DNA of 63,654 bases, counting the filler, from Pelomyxa schiedti (taxonomy: Eukaryota > Protista > Evosea): NCBI GenBank assembly GCA_020536535.1. It is 10 parts of 10 records of this genome, joined end to end, with 100 filler letters (N's around TTAATTAATTAA, not from the genome) between each part and the next. Parts side by side here need not be neighbours in the genome. Positions count along the whole stretch, not along the records: positions 55,990 to 63,654 come from JAHLWZ010001345.1; 9 more parts are not named here. One strand, written 5' to 3'. The notes under the pieces were generated by a model. It worked only from the letters and a program-made list of their open reading frames with translations, was not told where the DNA came from and did no database searches. Shown here piece by piece: positions 1-63,654 of the stretch; position 1 is the first letter of the stretch, and each line of letters begins with the position of its first letter. The translations under genes were made by a program, and so were the position numbers.

Positions 1-1799
1 CTCACAAGGAGGTGATAATTCCATGTGGAATCACACCTTCCATGGTGACCAGAGTGGATAAGAACCACAGAGGAGTAATGGGCTATGATGCTCGGGAATG
101 GATAAGAAGTATTCCTACGCATGCACCACAGTTCGTATCAAGGAGGAAGACAAGGGGAGCATCAGACCTGATGTCGATGAGGCGAGTGTGCAGGAGGCTG
201 CATGACCTGATGGGAACTGTTCCGTTCTGGATCGAGATGTGCAGGCACAGGTACGGATTCTTCGAGGTGAGGAACGAGATGACACCGGAGGAGGTGGCTG
301 CGTTGGAGGAGGAGAAGGCGGCGGCGAGGGAGAAGGCACAACTGGAGGCAAAAGCAATCGAAGAAGAGAAAGAGAGAAGGAAGGTGCTGAGGGAGAGACA
401 AGAACTTCGTGCCAAAACGAGAGCTGAGAGGGAGCTCGAAAAAAGGGCTGCTAAGGAGAAAGCCAAAGTAGAGAAACAAGCTGCTGCTGTGGCCGCAGCG
501 GAACTGGCACAGAATTTTTCAGTGAGTGCAGAACCGGAAATTAATCCCAAGGACTCTTGTGATTATGATGTTTGTGAAGACGAAGACTCTAATGTTAGTG
601 AATACTCGGATGCAGATGAAGCTGCAATTCCCTCCAAAATTGAAGCGGTTATTGCATATTCACACAGCAGAATCGTTCTGCCCACTGGTTGCAATGATGC
701 CTCTTGGTGGGAGAAAATATTCTTCGATGTTTCTCACACGTAAAATTCCTTCTCACTCCCCAGCAAGCCTTTGTCACTTGACAAAACAAACTAAAAACAG
801 AGGGTGTGATCACTGCAAAGCGTTTCCAATGGAAGTTTTCTTCAAGTGCCTCCACTGCAATGATGTTTATTTGTGTGAAAAATGCGAGTCCTTCCATCCA
901 CGGTTTGTCTCTTCCCAGGACAAATCTATTCCCCAACTGTTTTGACACAGGACACACCTCATGGCGAAAGTATCCACACCATTTCATTGGTCACAACCGA
1001 ATATCAGGCTTGCACCGAGACAGGCAATTCACACCGGAATTTGCAGTGTTTGTGCCTCTTCCTTTGGTGAAGTCCTTTATCAGGTTTCTTTCTTTCCCTC
1101 TCCACACTCTCCCAAATCCAACAGTGAATCTCACTCATTCTCTCTCTTTCAACAGTGCTCCGAATGTGACAATTACAAAATATGTCCCAGCTGTCACCAA
1201 TCCGGATCTGTCGAACACGAACACACCAAATTCTGGGAGGTTGTTGTTCCTGACAATGAACTGTACGATGCTAAACAACGTGGAAACAACCCGCGGTGGG
1301 CCTCATGTGATGGGAAAGGTTCCAAATGCATTAGGAGGTGTACTGGAATCAACTGGATGTGCTTGGTGCGTGTACCCTCCCTCCACCCACATTGATCAAA
1401 CAAAAAAACCAACGGAATCAAACGCAAAAAAAAGGTGTGCGATAACTATGACTTGTGTGAAGCCTGTGAGAGGAGCCGTGAATTCTCTTGCCGTAGTTAC
1501 AGTGGCAATGTATGTTCATGATTAAACTGCCACATCACACCTGACCCCGTTCACAGCGAAACACACATGACATGACACACCCTTTGTTGAAAATTCTGGA
1601 TTCCAAGTGTGTTGTGTTCTCTCGTTTCAATTTTTATTCTCACAGAAACACAGATATGACACGTCCAAGTGGGTATTGTCATTCACTGAGTGCCACTTCT
1701 GAGTTGCCCTTCCATGTCCCCATCACAAATTTGTTATTGTTAGTTCCCCGTCTGATCGTAGGATACCCCACATCAACCCTACACCGAACCAGGTTTTGA
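1..1799 (+). CDS. F-box-like/coiled-coil/triple ZZ-type zinc-finger protein, copy 1 (type alpha, 5'-truncated)
   Basis: Spliced reading across short GT-AG introns: ASDLMSMRRVCRRLHDL (F-box C-half), an E/K/R coiled coil, then three Cys clusters (CDHC..CLHCNDVYLCEKCESFH; CSVC..CSECDNYKICPSCH; CDG..CL|VCDNYDLCEAC..H) matching the ZZ-finger pattern. The 3' end is approximate. Confidence 0.75.
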
Positions 1800-3299
1800 T
1801 GAACGCCGCCGTGGGGCCGCGGCTCGTTGATCTCCCCGACAGCGTCATCGTAGCCATCGCATCCTACGTCTCGGCCGACACCACCCCCCTGTCGCAACAG
1901 CCCTGCACCCAAACGCATCAGCATACCTGGTGTCCCACCTTGCAACCAGCCGCCTCACCCAAATGCATCATCGGATCCGAAGAACCGCCGCCGGAGTCGG
2001 AGGACGAGCCTGCTGCTGCGTCGCGATTGCACCACGTGGTGGCGGTGCCCAGTGGAATCACACCGTCGATGGTGAAGAGACTGGAAGGGGCCCAGCCGGG
2101 CAAGAAGACCCTCGATGACGAGTGGGAAGAGCAGGAAAGGATCAGAGGTCTGGCGGCGGACATCGCACCACAGTTCGTGTCGAGGAGGAAGACGAGGGGG
2201 GCATCGGACCTGATGTCGATGAGGCGAGTGTGCAGGAGGCTGCATGACCTGATGGGAACGGTTCCGTTCTGGATCGAGATGTGCAGGCACAGGTACGGAT
2301 TCTTCGAGGTGAGGAACGAGATGACACCGGAGGAGGTGGCTGCGTTGGAGGAGGAGAAGGCGGTGGCGAGGGAGAAGGCACAACTGGAGGCAAAAGCAAT
2401 CGAAGAAGAGAAGGAGAGAAGGAAGGTGCTGAGGGAGAGACAGGAACTTCGTGCCAAAAGGAGAGAACTCCAAAGAAGGGCAGTGGCTGAGGAGCAAGCT
2501 GAAAGAGAGAAACAAGCTGCCTCAACAGCACCGGAAATGACACAAAATCAATCACAGAGTGGAGAGCAAGATTCACAACCTTCTGTTGATACCACCGCCA
2601 CAACAACCACAACAACCCCAACAACCCCAACAACACCTGAAACACCCAGTGGTTCAACTGGACCACCGAGGATTGATCCCAATGACCCAGCGTTTCCTGA
2701 TGCCCTCGTTCCCACAATCTCTGTTCCTGAACCACCTGACCCTGATGATGATGACGAGGAGGAGGATGCGGCAGTCGACGCAGATGAATCTGCCATTCCC
2801 TCCAAAATGGAAGCGGTTGTTGCATATTCGCACAGCAGGATCGTTCTCCCCACCGGTTGCAATGATGCCTCTTGGTGGGAGAAAATATTCTTCGATGTTT
2901 CGCACATGTCAAGCGTCTTCTCACTCTCATTCAAACACGCCTTTTCACTTTTCCCCTCTCCAAAAAACGAACAGAGGATGTGACCACTGCAAAGCGTTTC
3001 CAATGGAAGTGTTCTTCAAGTGCCTCCACTGCAACGATGTTTATTTGTGTGAAAAATGTGAGTCCTTCCACCCGAGGTTTGTTTCCCTTCGTACGTAAAT
3101 CTCCTCCTCCACCAAACGGGATTTTTGACACAGGACACACCTCATGGCGAAAGTATCCACACCATTCCACTGGTCACAACCGAACATCACGCTTGCACCA
3201 GCACATGCAATTCACACCGGAATTTGCAGTGTTTGTGCCTCTTCCTTTGGTGAAGTCATTTATCAGGTTTCTTTCTTTCCCTCGTTCGCACTCTCCCAA
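1799..3299 (+). CDS. F-box-like/ZZ-finger protein, copy 2 (type beta; runs into the gap)
   Basis: ORF 1796-2983 has LVDLPDSVIVAIASYV ... DLMSMRRVCRRL and the same ZZ exons as copy 1. Confidence 0.75.
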
Positions 3300-3399
3300 N
3301 NNNNNNNNNNNNNNNNNNNNNNNNNNNNNNNNNNNNNNNNNNNNNNNNNNNNNNNNNNNNNNNNNNNNNNNNNNNNNNNNNNNNNNNNNNNNNNNNNNN

Positions 3400-4984
3400 G
3401 ACCTGATGGGAACGGTTCCGTTCTGGATCGAGATGTGCAGGCACAGGTACGGATTCTTCGAGGTGAGGAACGAGATGACACCGGAGGAGGTGGCTGCGTT
3501 GGAGGAGGAGAAGGCGGCGGAGAGGGAGAAGGCACAACTGGAGGCAAAAGCAATCGAAGAAGAGAAGGAGAGAAGGAAGGTGCTGAGGGAGAGACAAGAA
3601 CTTCGTGCCAAAAGGAGAGCTGAGAGGGAGCGCGAAAAAAGGGCTGCTAAGGAGAAAGCCAAAGTAGAGAAACAAGCTGCTGCTGTGGCCGCAGCGGAAT
3701 GGGCACAGAATTTTTCAGCGAGTACAGAACCGGAAATTGATCCCAAGGACTCTTGTGATTCTGATGTTAGTGAAGACCAAGACTCTGATGTTAGTGAATA
3801 CTCGGATGCAGATGAAGCTGCCATTCCCTGCAAAATTGAAGCGGTTGTTGCATATTCACACAGCAGAATCGTTCTGCCCACCGGTTGCAATGATGCCTCT
3901 TGGTGGGAGAAAATATTCTTCGATGTTTCTCACATGTAAAATTCCTTCTCACTCCCCAGTAAGCCTTTGTGACTTGACCAACAAAACAAACCAAAAACAG
4001 AGGGTGTGATCACTGCAAAGCGTTTCCGATGGAAGTTTTCTTCAAGTGCCTCCACTGCAATGATGTTTATTTGTGTGAAAAATGTGAGTCCTTCCACCCA
4101 AGGTTTGTCTCTTCCCAGGACAAATCTATTCCCCAACTGTTTTGACGCAGGACACACCTCATGGCGAAAGTATCCACACCATTCCACTGGTCACAACCGA
4201 ATATCAGGCTTGCACCGAGACAGGCAATTCACACCGGAATTTGCAGTGTTTGTGCCTCTTCCTTTGGTGAAGTCATTTATCAGGCTTCTTTCTTTCCCTC
4301 TCCACACTCTCCCAAATTGCACAGTGAATCTCATTCTCTCTCTCTTCAACAGTGCTCCGACTGTGACAATTACAAAATATGTCCCGGCTGTCACAAATCC
4401 AGATCTGTCGAACACGAACACTCCAAATTCTGGGAGGTTGTTGTTCCTGACAATGAATTGTACGATGCCAAACAACGTGGAAACAACCCGCGGTGGGCCT
4501 CATGTGATGGGAAAGGTTCCAAGTGCATGAGGAGGTGCACTGGAATCAACTGGATGTGCTTGGTGTGTGTGCCCTCCCTCCATCAAACAAAAAAACCAAC
4601 AGCATCAAACACAAAAAAAAGGTGTGCGATAACTATGACTTGTGCGAAGCCTGTGAGAGGAGCCGCGAATTCTGTTGCCGTAGTTACAGTGGCAATGTAT
4701 GTTCATGATTCAACTGCCACATAACACCTGACCCCGTTCACAGCGAAACACACATGACATGACACACCCTTTGTTGAAAATTCTGGATTCCAAGTGTGTT
4801 CTCTCGTTTCAATTTTTATTCTCACAGAAACACAGATATGACACGTCCAAGTGGGTATTGTCATTCACTGCGTGCCACTTCTGAGTTGCCCTTCCATCAC
4901 AAATTTGTTTCAAAAAAAATGAAGGAAAGTACCTCTGCCGTCGAGCCGCGACCCAATGGATATCTTAATGTGATTTTTGTTTGA
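3400..4984 (+). CDS. F-box-like/ZZ-finger protein, copy 3 (type alpha; 5' end in the gap)
   Basis: Near-identical to copy 1 with the same intron positions. Confidence 0.72.
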
Positions 4985-5057: not shown

Positions 5058-6744
5058 ATGAACGCGCCCGATAGCAGGGTGGGGCCACCCCCCGGGACAA
5101 CCGCCGCCGTGGGGCCGCGGCTCGTGGATCTCCCGGACAGCATCATCGTAGCCATCGCGTACTACGTCGCGGCCGACCCCAGGCCCCAGTCGACCCAAAA
5201 GCATCATCATATCTGGTGTCCCACCTCACCAGCCGCCGCACCCAAAGGCATCATCGGATCCGAAGAAACTCAGCCAGCGTCGGAGGACGAGCCTGCTGCT
5301 GCGTCGCGATTGCACCACGTGGTGGCGGTGCCCAGTGGAATCACACCGTCGATGGTGAAGAGACTGGAAGGGGCCCAGCCGGGCAATAAGATCCTCGATG
5401 ACGAGTGGGAAGAGCAGGAAAGGATCAGAAGTCTGGCGGCGGACATCGCACCACAGTTCGTGTCGAGGAGGAAGACGAGGGGGGCGTCGGACCTGATGTC
5501 GATTAGGCGAGTGTGCAGGAGGCTGCATGACCTGATGGGAACTGTTCCGTTCTGGATCGAGATGTGCAGGCACAGGTACGGATTCTTCGAGGTGAGGAAC
5601 GAGATGACACAGGAGGAGGTGGCTGCGTTGGAGGAGGAGAAGGCGGCGGAGAGGGAGAAGGCACAACTGGAGGCAAAAGCAATCGAAGAAGAGAAGGAGA
5701 GAAGGAAGGTGCTGATGGAGAGACAGGAACTTCGTGCCAAAAGGAGAGAACTCCAAAGAAGGGCAGTGGCTGAGGAGCAAGCCGAAAGAGAGAAACAAGC
5801 TGCCTCAACAGCACCGGAAATGACACAAAATCAATCACAGACAACCTTCTGTTGATACCACCGCCACAACAACCACAACAACCCCAACAACACCTGAAAC
5901 ACCCAGTGGTTCAACTGGACCACCGAGGATTGATCCCAATGACCCAGCGTTTCTTGATGCCCTCGTTCCCACAATCTCTGTTCCTGAACCACCTGAGCCT
6001 GATGATGATGACGAGGAGGAGGATGCGGCAGTCGACGCAGATGAATCTGGCATTCCCTCCAAAATGGAAGCGGTTGTTGCATATTCGCACAGCAGGATCG
6101 TTCTGCCCACCGGTTGCAATGATGCCTCTTGGTGGGAGAAAATATTCTTCGATGTTTCGCACATGTAAAGCGTCTTCTCACTCTCATTCAACACGCCTTT
6201 TCACTTGTCCCCTCTCCAAAAAACGAACAGAGGATGTGACCACTGCAAAGCGTTTCCAATGGAAGTTTTCTTCAAGTGCCTCCACTGCAATGATGTTTAT
6301 TTGTGTGAAAAATGTGAGTCCTTCCACCCGAGGTTTGTCTCTTCTTCCCTTCTCGTGGTAAATCTCCTCCTCCACCTCCAACGGGATTTTTGACACAGGA
6401 CACACCTCATGGCGAAAGTATCCACACCATTTCATTGGTCACAACCGAACATCACGCTTGCACCAGCACATGCAATTCACACTGGAATTTGCAGTGTTTG
6501 TGCCTCTTCCTTTGGTGAAGTCATTTATCAGGTTTCTTTCTTTCCCTCCTTTGCACTCTCCCAATATTTCGAGTTGGGTGAGTCTCACTCTCTCTCTCAT
6601 TCTCTCTCTTTCAACAGTGCTCTGAATGCGACAATTACAAAATATGTCCCGGCTGTCACGAAGCGGGATCGGTGGAACACGAACACTCCAAATTCTGGGA
6701 GGTTGTTGTTCCTGACAATGAACTGTATGATGCAGAACAACGCG
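5058..6744 (+). pseudogene. F-box-like/ZZ-finger protein, copy 4 (type beta), frameshifted
   Basis: Near-identical to copy 2 but lacks the 17 nt GTGGAGAGCAAGATTCA at ~5840, giving a stop at 5853-5855. Truncated by the contig end. Confidence 0.7.
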
Positions 6745-55989: not shown

Positions 55990-56255
55990 GACAGGCCTGA
56001 CTTTGACATTCTCACTGATGACACAGAGTGCCTGGACATATTTTTGAGCTGTGCCACACACGCTATGTGGCGGTAGCACCCTCGGCACATGATGTGCCCG
56101 CACGACGACGATGTTGTTGATGATGTGAAAGAGGAAGTGGCAACGTCTCCGAGAGATGACGACGACGTTGAATGTGGGATGTCATCATGATCGGAAGGAA
56201 ACAACACGGGGTCGGAAATGGGACACCCACACACGCTGCATGATGGGGTCGTCAT
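55990..56255 (-). CDS. RING-finger protein, N-terminal fragment
   Basis: CSVC...CGHIMCRGC (C3HC4-like, with a Ser-rich insert). Confidence 0.65.
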
Positions 56256-56354
56256 TCACTGAATTGATAGGGGAAGATTCTAATCAACAATTAAGCGCTT
56301 GCCAACCCAGTCAGGCCTTTGCCTGAAAACCAGGCTTTTCCAAAGGTTAAAATC

Positions 56355-59300
56355 TCAGGTTTTTCTCCCTTTCTTAGTGGTTTTTTGGGCTTTCTTTGAT
56401 GTGGCACTGACTTTTGGAGGGGCATTGTTCCGCTTTCTTTTTGGTGGTACTGGGGCATCATCAGTGTTTTCTTGTGACTTGTGTGTTCTTTTCTGCCCTG
56501 TTTCTTGTACTTCAGCACCTGGATGGTCCCTGCCACTCTCCTCTTCCCCATCGGAATCACTTACAGTGGGTGGAGATGCTTCCAAGGATTGTGAATTACC
56601 ACCTGTACATTTTGTTAACATAAGCTAAGAGTACCAACACAGATACTTGTTACAGTCTCATTGGCGGTCTCCAGTAGGTTACCAACACTGCTTTGTGGCA
56701 CTGGTGGGGGTGGCCCTTGTTGGAGTATGGGGGGTCTCTCCTTCCATGAAAGCAGAAGTACTAGTTGACAACGATCTGATAAGACAAGGTATTTGTTGTT
56801 GTTCAGTTATTGTTGGAAGTAATTGAGGTATAATGGGTTCTGGTGGTGGTAGTAACAGAGGGATGTTTGTTCAATCTGTGTTGATATTGATGTTTGGAGT
56901 GGAGGAGATGTTGGCAGAGAAGCTGTGGGTACATGTGCATCAAGTTCCTCTATCTGAATGCCACCTCCAGCAGTCAGCAGAGGTGGAGGTGGTACGGTTA
57001 CCCTGTAAGGAACCAGAGAGTTGGCTGTAGATGTTGGAGAGGTAAAATCTAGAACTCCTGACAGAAGTGTTTCATGTTGAACCCTCCTCATCTCAATTCA
57101 CTGCTCTGTCCGAAGTTGAGAGCAATTATGGAGAGCTGTTTCCCTGTCATGCATGGAGATTGTGCGATAAGAACTCGTCATCTTAAACCAACTGCTGTGG
57201 GAATGAAGATACCTGCCCCAACAGTGAAGGTGAACCTGCCTGATGTTAATCTTAAGCACAATTAAACCATAAAATACCTCGTGTGTCAGGGTCACTTTCA
57301 AGAACTGCCTCATGTTTGCATTCAAGGAAGTGTCAATACCCAAGTAGTACATATTGTCTCGAAGGGAAAGGGCACAAAGATTGAAACCAGAATCAAAACC
57401 GATCTGCAGCAGGTGGTGTGGCTTGTCCCCAACAATACTGTACAAACAGTGAATTATCTCAATGAATGAGTCCACAGAGAGACCAAGCATTGGTTCAATA
57501 TGAGAAGCGGCTGGAAGATATTGGATGAGCCTCTCATCAATATTCACTCTCATAGTGTTCCCCTTGAAGGCGTCATGGATGCCAGTGAAATGCTGTTGCA
57601 GACCATCACGGCAGTAGAACTGCATTAAGGCAACCAATGTACCCTTCTTCTTCCCTGGGCCAACAAAGGGGACTTTGATGCACTGTGGAGCCAGCAACAC
57701 AACATTTTGCTGCAAAAGGCATAACCCTGCAGCCGCTGTTCTGTGCAATTTAGGCCATTCTTCTTGTGTAGAAATCATCACAAACAGACCTGAATTGAAA
57801 TCAGAAAGAAATCAAAGGAATAGGCTCAAGCCATACATCCATTTGCGGTTAGCTGCTCCAACAGCCCACTTGATGTGAAGTTCTGTCCATGAAGAGAAGG
57901 TGACAGAAAACAAATATCAGCAGTCCATTTTTCCTTCTGTGCTGCCTCGACCAACTTCATTGTGTGGCATTCCTCCAATGTAAACACACATTGACTCAAA
58001 AATGTTTCTAAGGAAACAAGACCATCAGCATAATGCCGCTGGATTAAAACAAGTTAGAGCATAGTATGGAAATTGAGTGCATAGATACTTCTCCATAAAC
58101 CATGGCATTATAGTTCCAGGGAATATTCCTTTGCCAGTCTTCATTGTCTTTTGCCTGGTGAAGAAGTGAGACAAAAAAAGAGGCTGTGAGGAGAGGGAGT
58201 ACATCTTTAACTTCTTTTATGAGTGGGACAATTTTCGATTTATCTGTCACTGCACCATCCAAAACAGCAAACCCCACAATACCAAGCTGCCGATGTGTTG
58301 GTAACCCAGTGATACCACGTACATCCCCATCAAGTAAGCCAGCATCTATGACCTCCTTCAGCACTAACTCCTCAGATTGACTTGTCAAGTGTTTCGCTTC
58401 ACTAATACGAGAGTGCAGAGCTTCTATATTTGCAGAAGCTTGTGCAGTAGACATTTTCCCAGCATTGCTGCAGATTGAGCTGATACCAAGTGAATAATAT
58501 CAGGGAGATTGTGGGAGCAAACTCTAGATATGTGCGAATAAGCTCCCAAGGAAGCTGCCAGACTCTCATGTGGAAGTAAGTTTCATGTGTAAAGTTGTGC
58601 AAAGATTTTGTTGTATCAGCTCTGGTAGTGTGGTACCAAGACTGAAGTTGTTCAGTCATTCCCTCAGAGTGTTGTCGCCGTAAAATAGGAATGACATGAC
58701 GAATATTATTGGCCTTCCACCACTCATCAGTAGAAAGCTGGAGAAGGAGTGAATAGTGAATGGTTGAAGGCTACAGACCATTATAGCCTCGAGTTCTGCT
58801 GTAAGGGTTTCCACAGTCCACACCCCTTTCACATGTCCATGTTTTGGAGCAAAAAAATCTGGTGCCATGGAATTAATCATCACCAAACATTCCAGATTCC
58901 ATTCTGGGAATGAGCAGCTTAGTAGCTTCCGTGTGACAGTTTGTTTGAAGTGTGCAATATTGTAGTCATCTGTTGCAGTGTGATCTGATTTCAAAGTGGA
59001 ATAAGGCAGAGCTTCTACAACAACAAACTCAGGAATTGTTCTAAGGTAAATGAGATGAATGGGTAATAAAGAAGTTAATAACGCACTGCAGTGGGTCTGT
59101 CTCTGTGAATGGTTTGGCTTTCCTGTCTTCTTCTTCAATCTGAGCTTTGAGTGACTGTAGTGCAAATGTCTTCCGGCTCTCAATGGCTAGTGGGGGAGCC
59201 TGCACAAGGGATTGCAAAGCCGCCACACCTGAATTGGGTGGAAGAGGTTGCGATGGAGATGAACTTGTTGTTGTGGTAGTGCAGGTAGTTGAGGACCACT

Positions 59301-60320
59301 GGTTTCTCCTGCCCTGTATAACATGAACAAGTGCTTGCTCTGCAGTAGAGAGACGCTCAGGAAATGCTAGTCTCAGGTTGGCTATGTTGAAAAGTGAGGA
59401 TCTTACATATAAACCCAGATTTAAGCCCCCTTTTCTTCATACTTCTCTGGCCGGCGCCGGCCAACCAAAAACACCATTTATACAGGTGAAATTATAAAAA
59501 CAACAGGCACTCAACCATGGCAGTTCCAGCCGGCGCCGGCCGAAACATTTTTTGTTTTTCCCCCCCAAGTCGAAATTTAATGACAGAAAAGTGCGAACAC
59601 ACCTCCAGCATGGCACCTAGAGATCCTGTCATAGAAACCAGCAATGTCACTAGCCTTAAGAGTGATCAGATTTCTTCGCTCCACACTGTCTTGCCACTGC
59701 TGCACACTGATTCCCTGGAGGCATGCGCTCTCCGCACACAGTTTGACCCAGATCGAGGAGTCACTATGCCAGCCAAACTTCCGAATGTCTGCCTCACGAT
59801 CGGCAACTCGGCCGGCATCCAGATCCCGATCGTAATTACGAAAAACTAGTATTGATTGATGGTGTTATTGGCGATGCGGGTGCTCATTTTCACATCGAAG
59901 CACCATTATTTTTTGTTTTACCACCCACGGCACATGCATGTGGGGGATGCGCTTTGAGCTTTTGTGTTTTGTTTTCGGTTGTGCAGTGAGTTATGTGTTT
60001 GTTTTGAGGAGGAAACAAGCCTTGACACGTTTCCAAAATGCGGATTTTTGCAGTGAACACACATGACCCAATTGAGTTCAGCTCTGTTGGTGTGGCGCTG
60101 TGGAAGTATCGGTCTACAGTCACCCTCATCTGTTCGGTTTGTTGTGTTTCTACTTTTTGTTTCAGGGTTTCCTTCATTGTTTGCACAGCACTTTTTGTTG
60201 CCTCGGTACTGTGGAGAAATTAGTTCACAATGATGCGGAAACCAAAGATACATACAGGTTTGCCTTTTCCTTGTCTGTGCGTTTTTCCTTCTCTCTCTTT
60301 TGTGGGGTCCGCACATCACT
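56355..60320 (-). CDS. Transposon cargo gene (multi-exon) with a ParB-like N-region, a SAM-MTase-like segment and an NLS; one in-frame TGA
   Basis: Exons join in frame over GT-AG introns (e.g. 59602-59382). Motifs RDLDAGRVADREADIRKFGW..SIWV, LLQIGFDSG..YLGID and PPKRKR. The stop lies 10 bp inside the left TIR. TGA at 57098-57100. The start is uncertain. Confidence 0.65.
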
Positions 60321-60610
60321 ATCTAAGCGGCCTCACTCTTGTTTTTGGTTTCATCTTTCGTTTATGCTCCTTGCTTCTTGTTTTGTTTTTTTTTTTTTTG
60401 TTTCTTTTGTGTGCTGTTTTAGATTCTTGTCTGTTTCTTTGATGTTAACGCATTACCATAACTTTATTTGATAATGAAAAGTTGTACATTTCTACTGAAA
60501 TGGCCACATAAACTCTGTGGCATTTTCATGATAAAGACATCTTTACTGTGAATCGAGTTTTGATATTCCATTTCATTCATAACACTTTTTAAGTTTGCAT
60601 TCATTGAACA

Positions 60611-63050
60611 ATGGCAGCAACGCAAGGGACATCACCATCTTCACCCAAGTTTTGCTGTGCCCATAGTTGTGTTGCGGCATTCAGTTTACAACAAATCTGC
60701 CACGCAAGGGAGAAAGTACATTCAAAACTGAAGCTAGAGCAAGATATGTACTTTGTTAACAAATTGCAGCATTTCAGTGCACATAGTTATCAGTTTAAAG
60801 GTTTCAACCACTTTTCCTACTTGTTTATCTACTTTCATGTTTTTTTTAATTTTCGTATTGCAATTGTACAATAAATGCCAAACCAATCTTGACCAGTCTT
60901 CTAGGCAAGAATGTGTGCAGGTCTGCCTTTTGTTGGATATATGGAATTGGACATGAGCGCCTCAGCCACTTGCAGGCATTTGTGGCTGGATCCAGGTTTG
61001 TGTTTGTTTACATTCTTGTCACACCAAACTGAAGGTAAAGAGATGCAACTGACTACCGATGCTACAATTTTTCTTCTGAGGCTGCCAAACGCCAGACTGT
61101 CATTGAGTGGATTTCTTTGCATGTTGTTGAATCTCATTTGTGTGAGCCAATGGTTGGGGAGAAAGCTCTTGATCACGATGGGAATCAAAGGATTATATTG
61201 CCCGCATCAGAGACACTTTCTGATCTGTATACAAGACTTATTGATGACCTCCTTGCAGAGAACTCCCCGGCAGAGAGAGTATACATAAGCCTCTCCATTT
61301 TTTAGTTACTAAAGTGCACTCAGATTCCAAGCATGCGAACTTTCTACCGAGTTTTACAGAAGCAGTTTCCTTTTGTTGTTCATGAACGGATTACCACACA
61401 AACTCTGTGCTCCATTTGTGATCAGTTGAGGCGTACCAGGGCTGAAGCACTACGGGAGAGTGATTCTGAGCAGCTTGTTTCAATACAAAAAACTATTGAG
61501 GAGCATACCAAGCTTCACCTAGCAGAACGCCATTACCAGGAGAGACAATATGCCAAGTCTCACAACTATCCAACCCAGTTGGGTGCTGTATGTATGGATG
61601 CTAAACAACACCTTGTGCTTCCTCATTTTCGGAGAGGAACTGCAGCCTCACAAGGGTGTACCAAATATGCTTTACACATTATGGGCATCCAAGATCTGGC
61701 AAACAAGGACAGAGCAATATATTTGTACCTGGGAGAAACAACTCCAATGTTATTCTTTCCATTCTGCACCAAAATCTAACACGAATGTTCCTTCCTGTGC
61801 CACATGGTTTGCAGACAGGCACTGCCAAGAACCACTTCCGATACAAAAAGCTCTACCTTACCTTTGACAACGCTCCTGTGAACAAATGCCTGACTTCTTT
61901 ATTGTACTGTGGAATGCTGGTTGCCAAACGCTGGGTGCAGTCTGTTGAAGTTGGTTTTTTGCTTCCAGGACATGGGCATGGCCTGCAGGATCAACTATTC
62001 AGCTCTTTGCATTATCCCCTTCACACACAGGATGCCCTTACAGTACCAGCTTTTCTTGAGCTATGCCATTATGCTTACCAGCATAAGCCAGTCACTCTGT
62101 TTGTAATGGATATTGTATGGGATTGGCAGGGCTACTTTTCTCCATTCTTGTCAGGGTCTAAATGGAAGCACCTGGAGGACTGCTTTGGGTTCAAGATCTC
62201 AATTGGTGTTCCATCAGATTCCTCACATGATTCTGTTGTTGTCCAGTCAAGGAGATTTAATTCACAAGAACCGTGGTCAGAGTACAGGGCTGACTTGTAT
62301 CCTCATGGTCTCCCAACAGGTGTTCCATACACTGTGCCTGCTGATTTCTCGGTCTTCAAGTCCAGTGAAATTGATGCAATTTTGAAGGTGCTTCCTCCTT
62401 CACAGGCTGCTTTTACTTGGTGGAAATCTTTACGCACAGTACCTTCTGCTGTGTTCCCAGCATTTGATTCTAGCTGCTCATTAGTGTGTCTTGTCCTCAT
62501 TTATTTAACCATTTGTCTATAAGTGGTTGTAGTGCAATTTTGGCTGATTCTTAAGTGTGCTCCTTACTGTATCTTAGTGGAATGTGGAGAACTTCTGGAG
62601 CACTAATGGCTTTCTTCCTGCAAATGAAAGAGTGACAGTTCCACCACTGACTCCCCGGGCCTCAGCCATTCTGAAGAACCTTCAGCAAGTGCAGTCATGT
62701 TTTGGATCCCAACAGACCCACAAAGTACATATTTTCCATCCCTCTGCAACCACCATTGAGCACTGATTTTTCTCTCAGACCTTGGGGAATCTTCCTTTTA
62801 TTGTGTGGAGCCTCTTGTCTATTATTATGTGGCAACCAAGTGAGTTTTATTTTTTTTTCTTCTGGTGTTAAATGGTGAGAATCTCACCTTCTTTTAGGTA
62901 TGTCCTTTGGCGTGGCACAAAATCAGACACCTTCACAAAAACTCTAAAGCTAAAGCAAGTTCCTCGTAACAATATTAGCCGGTGCTGTTGTCACTTGATA
63001 CCACCAGTACCACGGTATGAAGAAAACCAGTGGCCACACTGCCTTTAACA
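60611..63050 (+). CDS. Sola-like DDD transposase (multi-exon; frameshift at ~61730)
   Basis: CCAHSC..F, VCRSAFCWIYGI, CSIC; candidate triad CMD(61597)AK, TFD(61866)NA..NK and FLLPGHGHGLQD(61989)QLFS. The 3' end is approximate. Confidence 0.82.
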
Positions 63051-63313
63051 CACCTCTTTTATGGTTTTAATGTTACATTTCAATAACAATTTCTTGTGGA
63101 TTTGAAGGAAGCACTTTCATTTTTACAATACACCGCACCAAGAGGCACACATGGATGCTCATTTTCACCTTGTCAAGGGGTGAAAATTTTCGAGTTTGGA
63201 GAAGCCTGGTTTTCTGGCAAAAGCCTGACTGGGTTGGCAAGCGCTTAATTCGTTGGTTACCCGAAATCGTCAGTAGTAGAACAAAAAACAAGGGAAAGCA
63301 CCCTCGTCGTTTC

Positions 63314-63654
63314 ATGTCGGCCGGTGACCCCAAGAGGGAAGACTGGGTTCGATTGATACGGTGCAACTACGCAAGCGATCAATTCATAGCTCTCGCCGTA
63401 GCTGCGTGGGCCTCGCAACCCAAAACCACCAACACGAGTTCTGCTCAAACACCCCTCGTGCGCGATGCGGAACCACCATCACAGTCAGGAGGCGTACGAC
63501 AGCCACCATCGTCACCATCATCATCACCACCACCACCACCACCAGCAGCAGCAGCGGCGAGTATGCTTCCCATGTACTTGATGGAATACATCGGGAGGGA
63601 GTGGGTGACGCCGACGGCTGTGTACGTGTGCAGGGTGTCACCAATTTATGCGAG
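63314..63654 (+). CDS. HxRCG-family-related gene, 5' part (open to the window end; absent from the ORF track)
   Basis: MSAGDPKREDWVRLIRCNYASDQFIALAV...MLPMYLMEYIGREWV with no stop. Confidence 0.65.
   Translation, partial: MSAGDPKREDWVRLIRCNYASDQFIALAVAAWASQPKTTNTSSAQTPLVRDAEPPSQSGGVRQPPSSPSSSPPPPPPAAAAASMLPMYLMEYIGREWVTPTAVYVCRVSPIYA

Follow-up and report, generated by a model that had tools for sequence, protein, structure and literature searches.

The stretch of DNA analysed here (the window, 63,654 nucleotides at its full length) ends with contig JAHLWZ010001345.1 of the anaerobic amoeba Pelomyxa schiedti (assembly GCA_020536535.1). The whole contig, 7,665 bp, forms the analysed piece, and it carries a 6,954-bp DNA transposon (positions 56293-63246) that is bounded by terminal inverted repeats (TIRs) and encloses two divergently transcribed, intron-containing genes: a Sola1-like DDD transposase gene on the plus strand (60611-63048) and a second, accessory gene on the minus strand (56355-60354). 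The TIRs are 52 bp long and agree at 49 of 52 positions; the left one (56293-56344, plus strand) starts with AAG, the right one lies at 63195-63246 (minus strand), and no inverted repeat in the piece is longer than the one they form (65 nucleotides, 89%). Target-site duplications (TSDs) AATT flank the unit at 56289-56292 and 63247-63250. Within the left TIR, two CAGGC(C/T)TT sub-repeats (56312 and 56331), 19 bp apart, are candidate transposase-binding sites. An initial annotation of this DNA had recognised the host, the inverted repeats (47/50 in its own register), the two divergent genes between them, the size of the second gene (about 4 kb), the 10 bp (56345-56354) that separate its stop codon from the left TIR, and a Sola-type DDD triad with a GH..D motif, and all of this stands. 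Its TTAA duplications, GCG termini and Sola3 framing, and the functional state that it implied for this copy, are revised below.

Both ends of the element read AATT-AA-GCG, and the window copy alone therefore permits either TTAA duplications with GCG termini or AATT duplications with AAG termini. Ten element ends were collected from related copies, and every one reads A-H-H-T followed by AAG, the targets being AATT (four ends), AACT (two), ACTT (two), AAAT (one) and ATTT (one). Two junctions could be compared with empty sites. At locus L009, a right end lies inside a transposase gene, and the filled site reads AACT-AAG where other copies read AACT-AC; at locus L011, a right end is found within a local repeat of the host, with ATT-AAG at the filled site and ATT-CC at an empty paralogue. 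The adenines before the G are thus element-derived. We conclude that the element spans 56293-63246, with 52-bp TIRs and AATT duplications, the register being set by the related ends and the empty sites. The TSD length of 4 is taken from the ten single ends and from a single copy with both ends, whose site is palindromic.

The transposase gene, whose start is uncertain, has exons at approximately 60611-60800, at 60905-60995, 61041-61278 and 61324-62483, from 62578 onwards, and at 62898-63048. Its product matches Pfam PF25273/DUF7869 (E 2.5e-17), carries a CxxC motif at 61408, and has its three catalytic aspartate codons at 61597, 61866 and 61989, each of which is also present in related copies; no match was found in viral contigs, plasmids or PDB. 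The last exon ends in a Cys/His/Trp-rich peptide (62898-63045, plus strand) that is conserved in loci L003, L004, L009 and L011 and is possibly a small metal-binding domain.

Sola1 DNA transposons were reportedly treated by Bao et al. in 2009. The termini of Sola3 elements are typically GAG. The DDD triad with GH..D around the third aspartate, the TIRs and the 4-bp TSD of the P. schiedti element are all features of the Sola superfamily. In a by-eye comparison rather than a computed score, the motifs round the three aspartates match the Sola1-1_AP row, and not Sola2-1_HM or Sola3-1_HM, among the Sola1, Sola2 and Sola3 reference rows (PMC3985635 supplement, where Sola1-1_AP is cluster E.10). The AWWT/AWDT target that is the hallmark of Sola1 (PMC3845634) is matched as AWWT at six of the ten ends and as A-H-H-T at all ten. 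Neither the TTAA duplication of Sola3 (from the ten ends and the empty-site comparisons) nor its GAG termini (AAG at 10/10 ends) are present, and the features of Kolobok elements, a TTAA duplication and a DDE transposase with a C/DxxH signature, are likewise absent. The AWWT-like target and the transposase motifs make the element Sola1-like and not Sola3, and we consider it very probable that it is a Sola1-like element with a dedicated second gene. With Sola1 it shares the layout of the DDD motifs, including GH..D (by eye), short TIRs and a 4-bp AWWT-like TSD. Unlike Sola1, it has a second large gene under selection, in divergent orientation, where a single transposase open reading frame (ORF) is the usual layout, though not a formal criterion; it has AAG termini, tolerates C in the target (AACT, ACTT), and is 7 kb long and intron-rich, whereas insect Sola1 examples measure 2-3 kb.

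The accessory gene extends over 4.0 kb, from an ATG at 60354 to a stop at 56355-56357, with about 12 exons and about 1,000 codons; NCBI holds a partial model of it, Pelo_17435. Exon 1 (60256-60354) is K/R-rich and has a +1 frameshift when compared with L011. Exon 2 (60021-60208) has a non-canonical GC splice donor at 60021 where L001 has GT; another GC donor was seen at about 1946 of L005, in a tail intron. Exon 3 (59603-59845) is ParB/Srx-like by eye only and has kept its CpG dinucleotides; exons 4-8 (59381-59087, 59040-58779, 58737-58523, 58479-58203 and 58154-58089) match no family; and exons 9-10 (58038-57837 and 57789-57278) resemble, by eye only, a degenerate beta-class amino-methyltransferase. 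Exon 11, which starts at 57235, contains a premature TGA at 57098-57100; the corresponding codon of L010 is a sense codon. The last exon (56355-56602) encodes an acidic segment and then a K/R-rich tail that looks like a nuclear localisation signal (NLS), and its stop codon stands at a similar distance from the TIR in L005.

The window copy is dead, since both of its genes are broken. In addition to the frameshift in exon 1 and the TGA in exon 11, the low-complexity tail of the accessory gene carries insertions and deletions. The transposase gene has lost 7 bp at 61730-61736 (near 61731, scored relative to L001, L002 and L004), which shifts the frame between the first and second aspartates, and about 125 bp after approximately 62698 relative to L011. 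The element is therefore complete, as the initial annotation had it, in its ends but not in its coding capacity. All remaining copies seen are more damaged than this one. Contig L007 from the P. schiedti transcriptome run SRR23919876 (PMC10579272) represents a spliced mRNA of the accessory gene, by which four introns are confirmed. Its source is a defective subfamily-C copy, with a frameshift at a splice junction, a TGA and a 47-nucleotide gap; dead copies are thus still transcribed.

Through protein searches, nine further loci were located in the same assembly, which are 65-80% identical to the window element and fall into subfamily B (L001 and L003) and subfamily C (L002, L004, L005, L006, L009, L010 and L011). 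Both genes are found in the same divergent layout in L001, L004, L006, L009 and L011, and the accessory stop adjoins the left TIR in L005 and L009; L002 and L003 begin at contig edges, before any accessory gene could appear. The ratio of nonsynonymous to synonymous divergence (dN/dS) was obtained from exon-by-exon codon counts, with spurious alignments of non-homologous loci filtered out. Between the window and the other subfamilies it is 0.16-0.31 for the accessory gene and 0.13-0.20 for the transposase. Individual accessory values, with confidence intervals (CI), are 0.19 against L011 (CI 0.13-0.26), 0.29 against L005 (0.22-0.38) and 0.24 against L001 (0.15-0.34). The nonsynonymous difference (pN) is well below the synonymous one (pS) in every accessory exon from 1 to 11a, and the signal is lost when reading frames are shifted. 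Among sibling copies dN/dS is about 1 for both genes, with wide intervals, and this contrast fits selection on an active lineage followed by decay after insertion. Synonymous divergence is alike in both genes (about 0.7-1.2 between window and C, 1.3-1.5 between window and B, and about 2 between B and C), and both genes as well as the TIRs give the grouping ((window,C),B). The initial annotation had proposed the second gene as a co-evolved component, to be judged by its co-occurrence with the transposase in divergent copies and by dN/dS below 1. Its presence beside the transposase in three subfamilies, the low ratios, the matching dS and the lack of a host donor among the homologues found bear this out, and we conclude that the accessory gene is supported as a dedicated, co-evolved component rather than a random capture.

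All homologues found of the accessory protein came from P. schiedti. The accessory exons were searched one by one, longer queries being database proteins (P0008 etc.); the C-terminal third received a full HMMER scan of 1.84 billion representatives, and the N-terminal and middle exons less sensitive searches. The HMMER scan yielded no homologue outside P. schiedti; two weak non-Pelomyxa matches to the C-terminal third were repeat proteins and were set aside. Word-based searches, sensitive only to proteins of similar length, returned no non-Pelomyxa homologue, and there was none in viral, metagenome or phage collections. The homologue searches found no TIR-free host donor of the gene, and the TIR pattern had no match in metagenomes.

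Two further features of the element bear on what the accessory protein may do. The first is the distribution of CpG. CpG is depleted in the gene bodies, with an observed/expected ratio (O/E) of 0.23-0.26, whereas the flanks stand at 0.9-1.0. Among sibling copies, transition differences affect 23% of CpG positions, against 0.6% elsewhere. These mutation spectra suggest that CpG decay is the signature of host 5-methylcytosine at CpG on the copies. One zone (59382-60610), which takes in the first three accessory exons, intron 3 and the divergent intergenic spacer of about 250 bp, has retained its CpG: in each of the three subfamilies O/E stays at about 0.8-0.9 over accessory exon 3 and intron 3, and in the window copy it is 0.65 from there to the transposase start. 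The second feature is a pair of GC-rich 16-bp palindromes in intron 3, about 80 bp apart, of which one is perfect (59448-59463) and the other forms seven of eight pairs (59527-59542). In subfamily C both palindrome copies carry a compensatory variant, and in subfamily B another palindrome occupies this position; by chance, about 0.18 perfect 16-bp palindromes would be expected per element. The motif has no other occurrence in the fetched loci. At the RNA level, the pair can also form a hairpin (z -2.7 to -8.0). Rfam gave no match.

Sola-family transposases bind the TIRs, excise the unit and insert it at AT-rich tetranucleotides with a 4-nucleotide stagger. The DDD transposase of the P. schiedti element would act in this manner, by cut-and-paste at its TIRs and with an AT-rich tetranucleotide target. 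In the mechanism that we favour, the accessory product would be a nuclear helper that acts in trans on the element's own DNA; most likely it would bind a subfamily-specific site, for example the palindrome pair in its own intron 3, and would protect the divergent promoter zone shared by the two genes from host CpG methylation, which would allow both to remain expressed. The CpG-retaining 5' zone and the conserved palindromes together suggest such a self-binding, anti-silencing helper. That the accessory protein acts on element DNA at all seems to us rather likely, while anti-silencing as its specific role is put forward tentatively, as one possibility. Taken as a whole, the explanation that joins this mechanism to the reading of the window copy as a decayed full-length member of a two-gene Sola1-type cut-and-paste family of P. 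schiedti stands, in our estimate, at an even chance.

A possible functional analogue is the VANC protein of VANDAL (Mutator-like) elements, an anti-silencing protein that keeps VANDAL active under methylation (PMC5735166). Both systems combine an element-specific accessory gene with host DNA methylation, and in both, short motifs that are specific to a lineage occur in non-coding regions, introns among them. VANDAL elements belong to another superfamily, no sequence similarity was detected between VANC and the P. schiedti accessory protein, and the P. schiedti element has one palindrome pair where VANDAL has arrays of tandem motifs.

Several points weigh against an anti-silencing helper. The case for methylation is drawn entirely from mutation spectra. 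In dead subfamily-C copies, CpG decay reaches 19% in the 5' zone versus 24% elsewhere (p=0.41), which is not significantly lower, and protection in trans is thus not visible today. A CpG-rich promoter zone requires no special protein, and the palindrome pair, given its folding, could act at the RNA level. The accessory exons and database proteins gave no significant match to Pfam, NCBIfam, PHROG or PDB sequences, and both AlphaFold models of the accessory protein are unusable (predicted local distance difference test, pLDDT, 34 and 30) because the alignment is too shallow. Finally, three lineages make weak evidence for co-phylogeny.

The main rival to the anti-silencing helper is a direct transposition cofactor, which would bind the termini or internal sites and recruit or bridge the transposase, with no role in anti-silencing. 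This too is possible, though we would not favour it strongly. Precedents exist: PIF/Harbinger elements encode a transposase and a Myb/SANT protein (ORF1), and CACTA elements encode TnpD and TnpA. The P. schiedti element resembles both in pairing its transposase with a dedicated, putatively nuclear second protein and differs from them in an unrelated transposase, in TSD length, in its termini and in that no Myb/SANT domain was found. Two-gene cut-and-paste systems are common, and Kolobok elements have accessory proteins as well (KolX etc., PMC9587614); they share with the P. schiedti element two genes, TIRs, a 4-bp TSD, purine-starting termini and occurrence in protists, and no match was detected between its accessory protein and KolX or other Kolobok accessories. 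A cofactor would also account for a selection pattern shared with the transposase, for the NLS-like tail, and for the conserved palindromes, which could be its binding sites. It is opposed by the lack of any detected known DNA-binding domain in the accessory protein and by known Sola1 elements, which have a single transposase ORF (PMC3845634), so that the chemistry of transposition does not need a partner.

A second proposal, which is compatible with the anti-silencing helper and would supply its biochemistry, is that the accessory gene descends from a phage-type fusion of ParB with a beta-class N6A/N4C DNA methyltransferase, either as a divergent active enzyme that marks element DNA or as a catalytically dead DNA-binding scaffold. 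The ParB plus methyltransferase architecture is known from phages, and methyltransferase-carrying eukaryotic elements exist (PMC4738411). By eye, the motif order is that of such fusions (PF02195 + PF01555 type), with exon 3 ParB-like and III/IV-like, V-like and X-I-II-like stretches following in exons 9-10; the best BLASTP alignment to E. coli YhdJ (E 0.14) and the best hhalign alignment (E 0.32), both non-significant, fall on the predicted methyltransferase motifs. Several S-adenosylmethionine (SAM) methyltransferases appear among the top Foldseek rows, all at E >0.1, and the poor AlphaFold models mean that these rows say nothing firm. Against the proposal, statistical tests with profiles built from fetched homologues gave it no support: hmmsearch with a beta-methyltransferase profile scored -0.4 bits (368/2000 shuffles as good), an ordered-block test gave z 1.3, hhalign against beta-methyltransferase profiles was equalled by 27/100 and 76/100 shuffles, and hhalign of exon 3 against ParB by 6/150, over 9 columns of a low-diversity template. 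The hhalign probabilities were below 2%, and even the reported significance values are optimistic because the test families were picked by eye. Exon 3 has no Pfam, PHROG or PDB match as ParB/Srx. The catalytic (D/N/S)PP(Y/F) is replaced by SPSL, TPSL or SPSI and the FxGxG motif by QIGFDSG, and about 300 extra residues lie between the parts in comparison with the phage fusions. We therefore regard this descent as doubtful. Other by-eye readings of the accessory motifs, as Mutator-like element (MULE)/SWIM, DOT1 or DExH, were dropped, having no Pfam support.

Passive capture of a host gene or gene fragment (Pack-type cargo) as the origin of the second gene is close to excluded, and so is an unrelated nested element. 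The gene is intron-rich, as host genes are, and has no known counterpart in other Sola elements; yet it has been under purifying selection across a dS of 1-2 in element-borne copies, keeps its position and orientation in all subfamilies, and is flanked by no TIRs or TSD of its own, and the homologues found lie in element remnants or at contig ends in every case, with no intact host gene among them. Weakest is a TTAA-specific Sola3-, Kolobok- or piggyBac-type element with GCG termini: TTAA can be read at both window ends and at seven of the ten ends overall, but the other three read CTAA or ATAA, whereas all ten fit A-H-H-T then AAG, the empty sites assign the adenines to the element and the catalytic motifs fit the reference for Sola1 but neither of those for Sola2 and Sola3; both that register and those memberships were rejected.

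Two divergent host ORFs flank the element: the left one (55990-56255, minus strand) is Cys/His RING-like, and the right one (63314-63654, plus strand) is of low complexity; the insertion point would be the intergenic spacer of about 100 bp between them. Several related loci are rearranged. At L009 (100-7430) a right end is joined inside a transposase gene at AACT and half of the element is inverted, which looks like self-insertion or intramolecular transposition. The same locus has an insertion of about 2.8 kb in the 5' part of the transposase gene (722-3499), with internal inverted repeats of 106 and 239 bp, and, in or next to the element, a separate repeat of about 400 bp in two inverted copies that are 97% alike (5217-5618 and 5851-6250), an unclassified non-autonomous element; ends related to this repeat occur at L006 (9815-9900). 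At L002 (1636-1730) a right-TIR segment without its outer bases is fused, inverted, to transposase sequence, a rearranged remnant. At the contig end of L010 (10043-10728), a fragment of the accessory gene includes an inverted duplication of 276 bp and may be an amplification chimera. Throughout L001-L011, many deletions of 5-100 bp accompany the CpG transitions, which suggests a strong deletion bias in the P. schiedti genome.

Remnants of the element are annotated by NCBI as ordinary hypothetical Pelomyxa genes. Searches of the open literature, Repbase and the founding paper not included, found no Sola element with a second gene; the lineage is likely undescribed, and its accessory gene is probably a dedicated helper of a kind for which no report in this transposon group was found. 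A narrower description, as the first Sola lineage with an accessory gene, whose orphan, possibly ParB-like plus dead-methyltransferase product would bind palindromes that co-evolve within its own intron and would protect the divergent promoter against host CpG methylation, is speculative and we think it unlikely to hold in full; on that description, an equally uncertain corollary is that a sequence-specific anti-silencing system evolved independently in an anaerobic amoeba. Sola elements are known as transposase-only, and here an orphan partner of about 1,000 codons has been kept across saturating synonymous divergence. The P. schiedti lineage thus adds Sola to the superfamilies known to carry accessory genes, and its partner is a new protein family open to characterisation. 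The mutations in its copies are also evidence that CpG methylation is directed at transposons in an archamoeba. Should the partner prove to be an anti-silencing factor that recognises a 16-bp target, VANC would have a counterpart outside plants.

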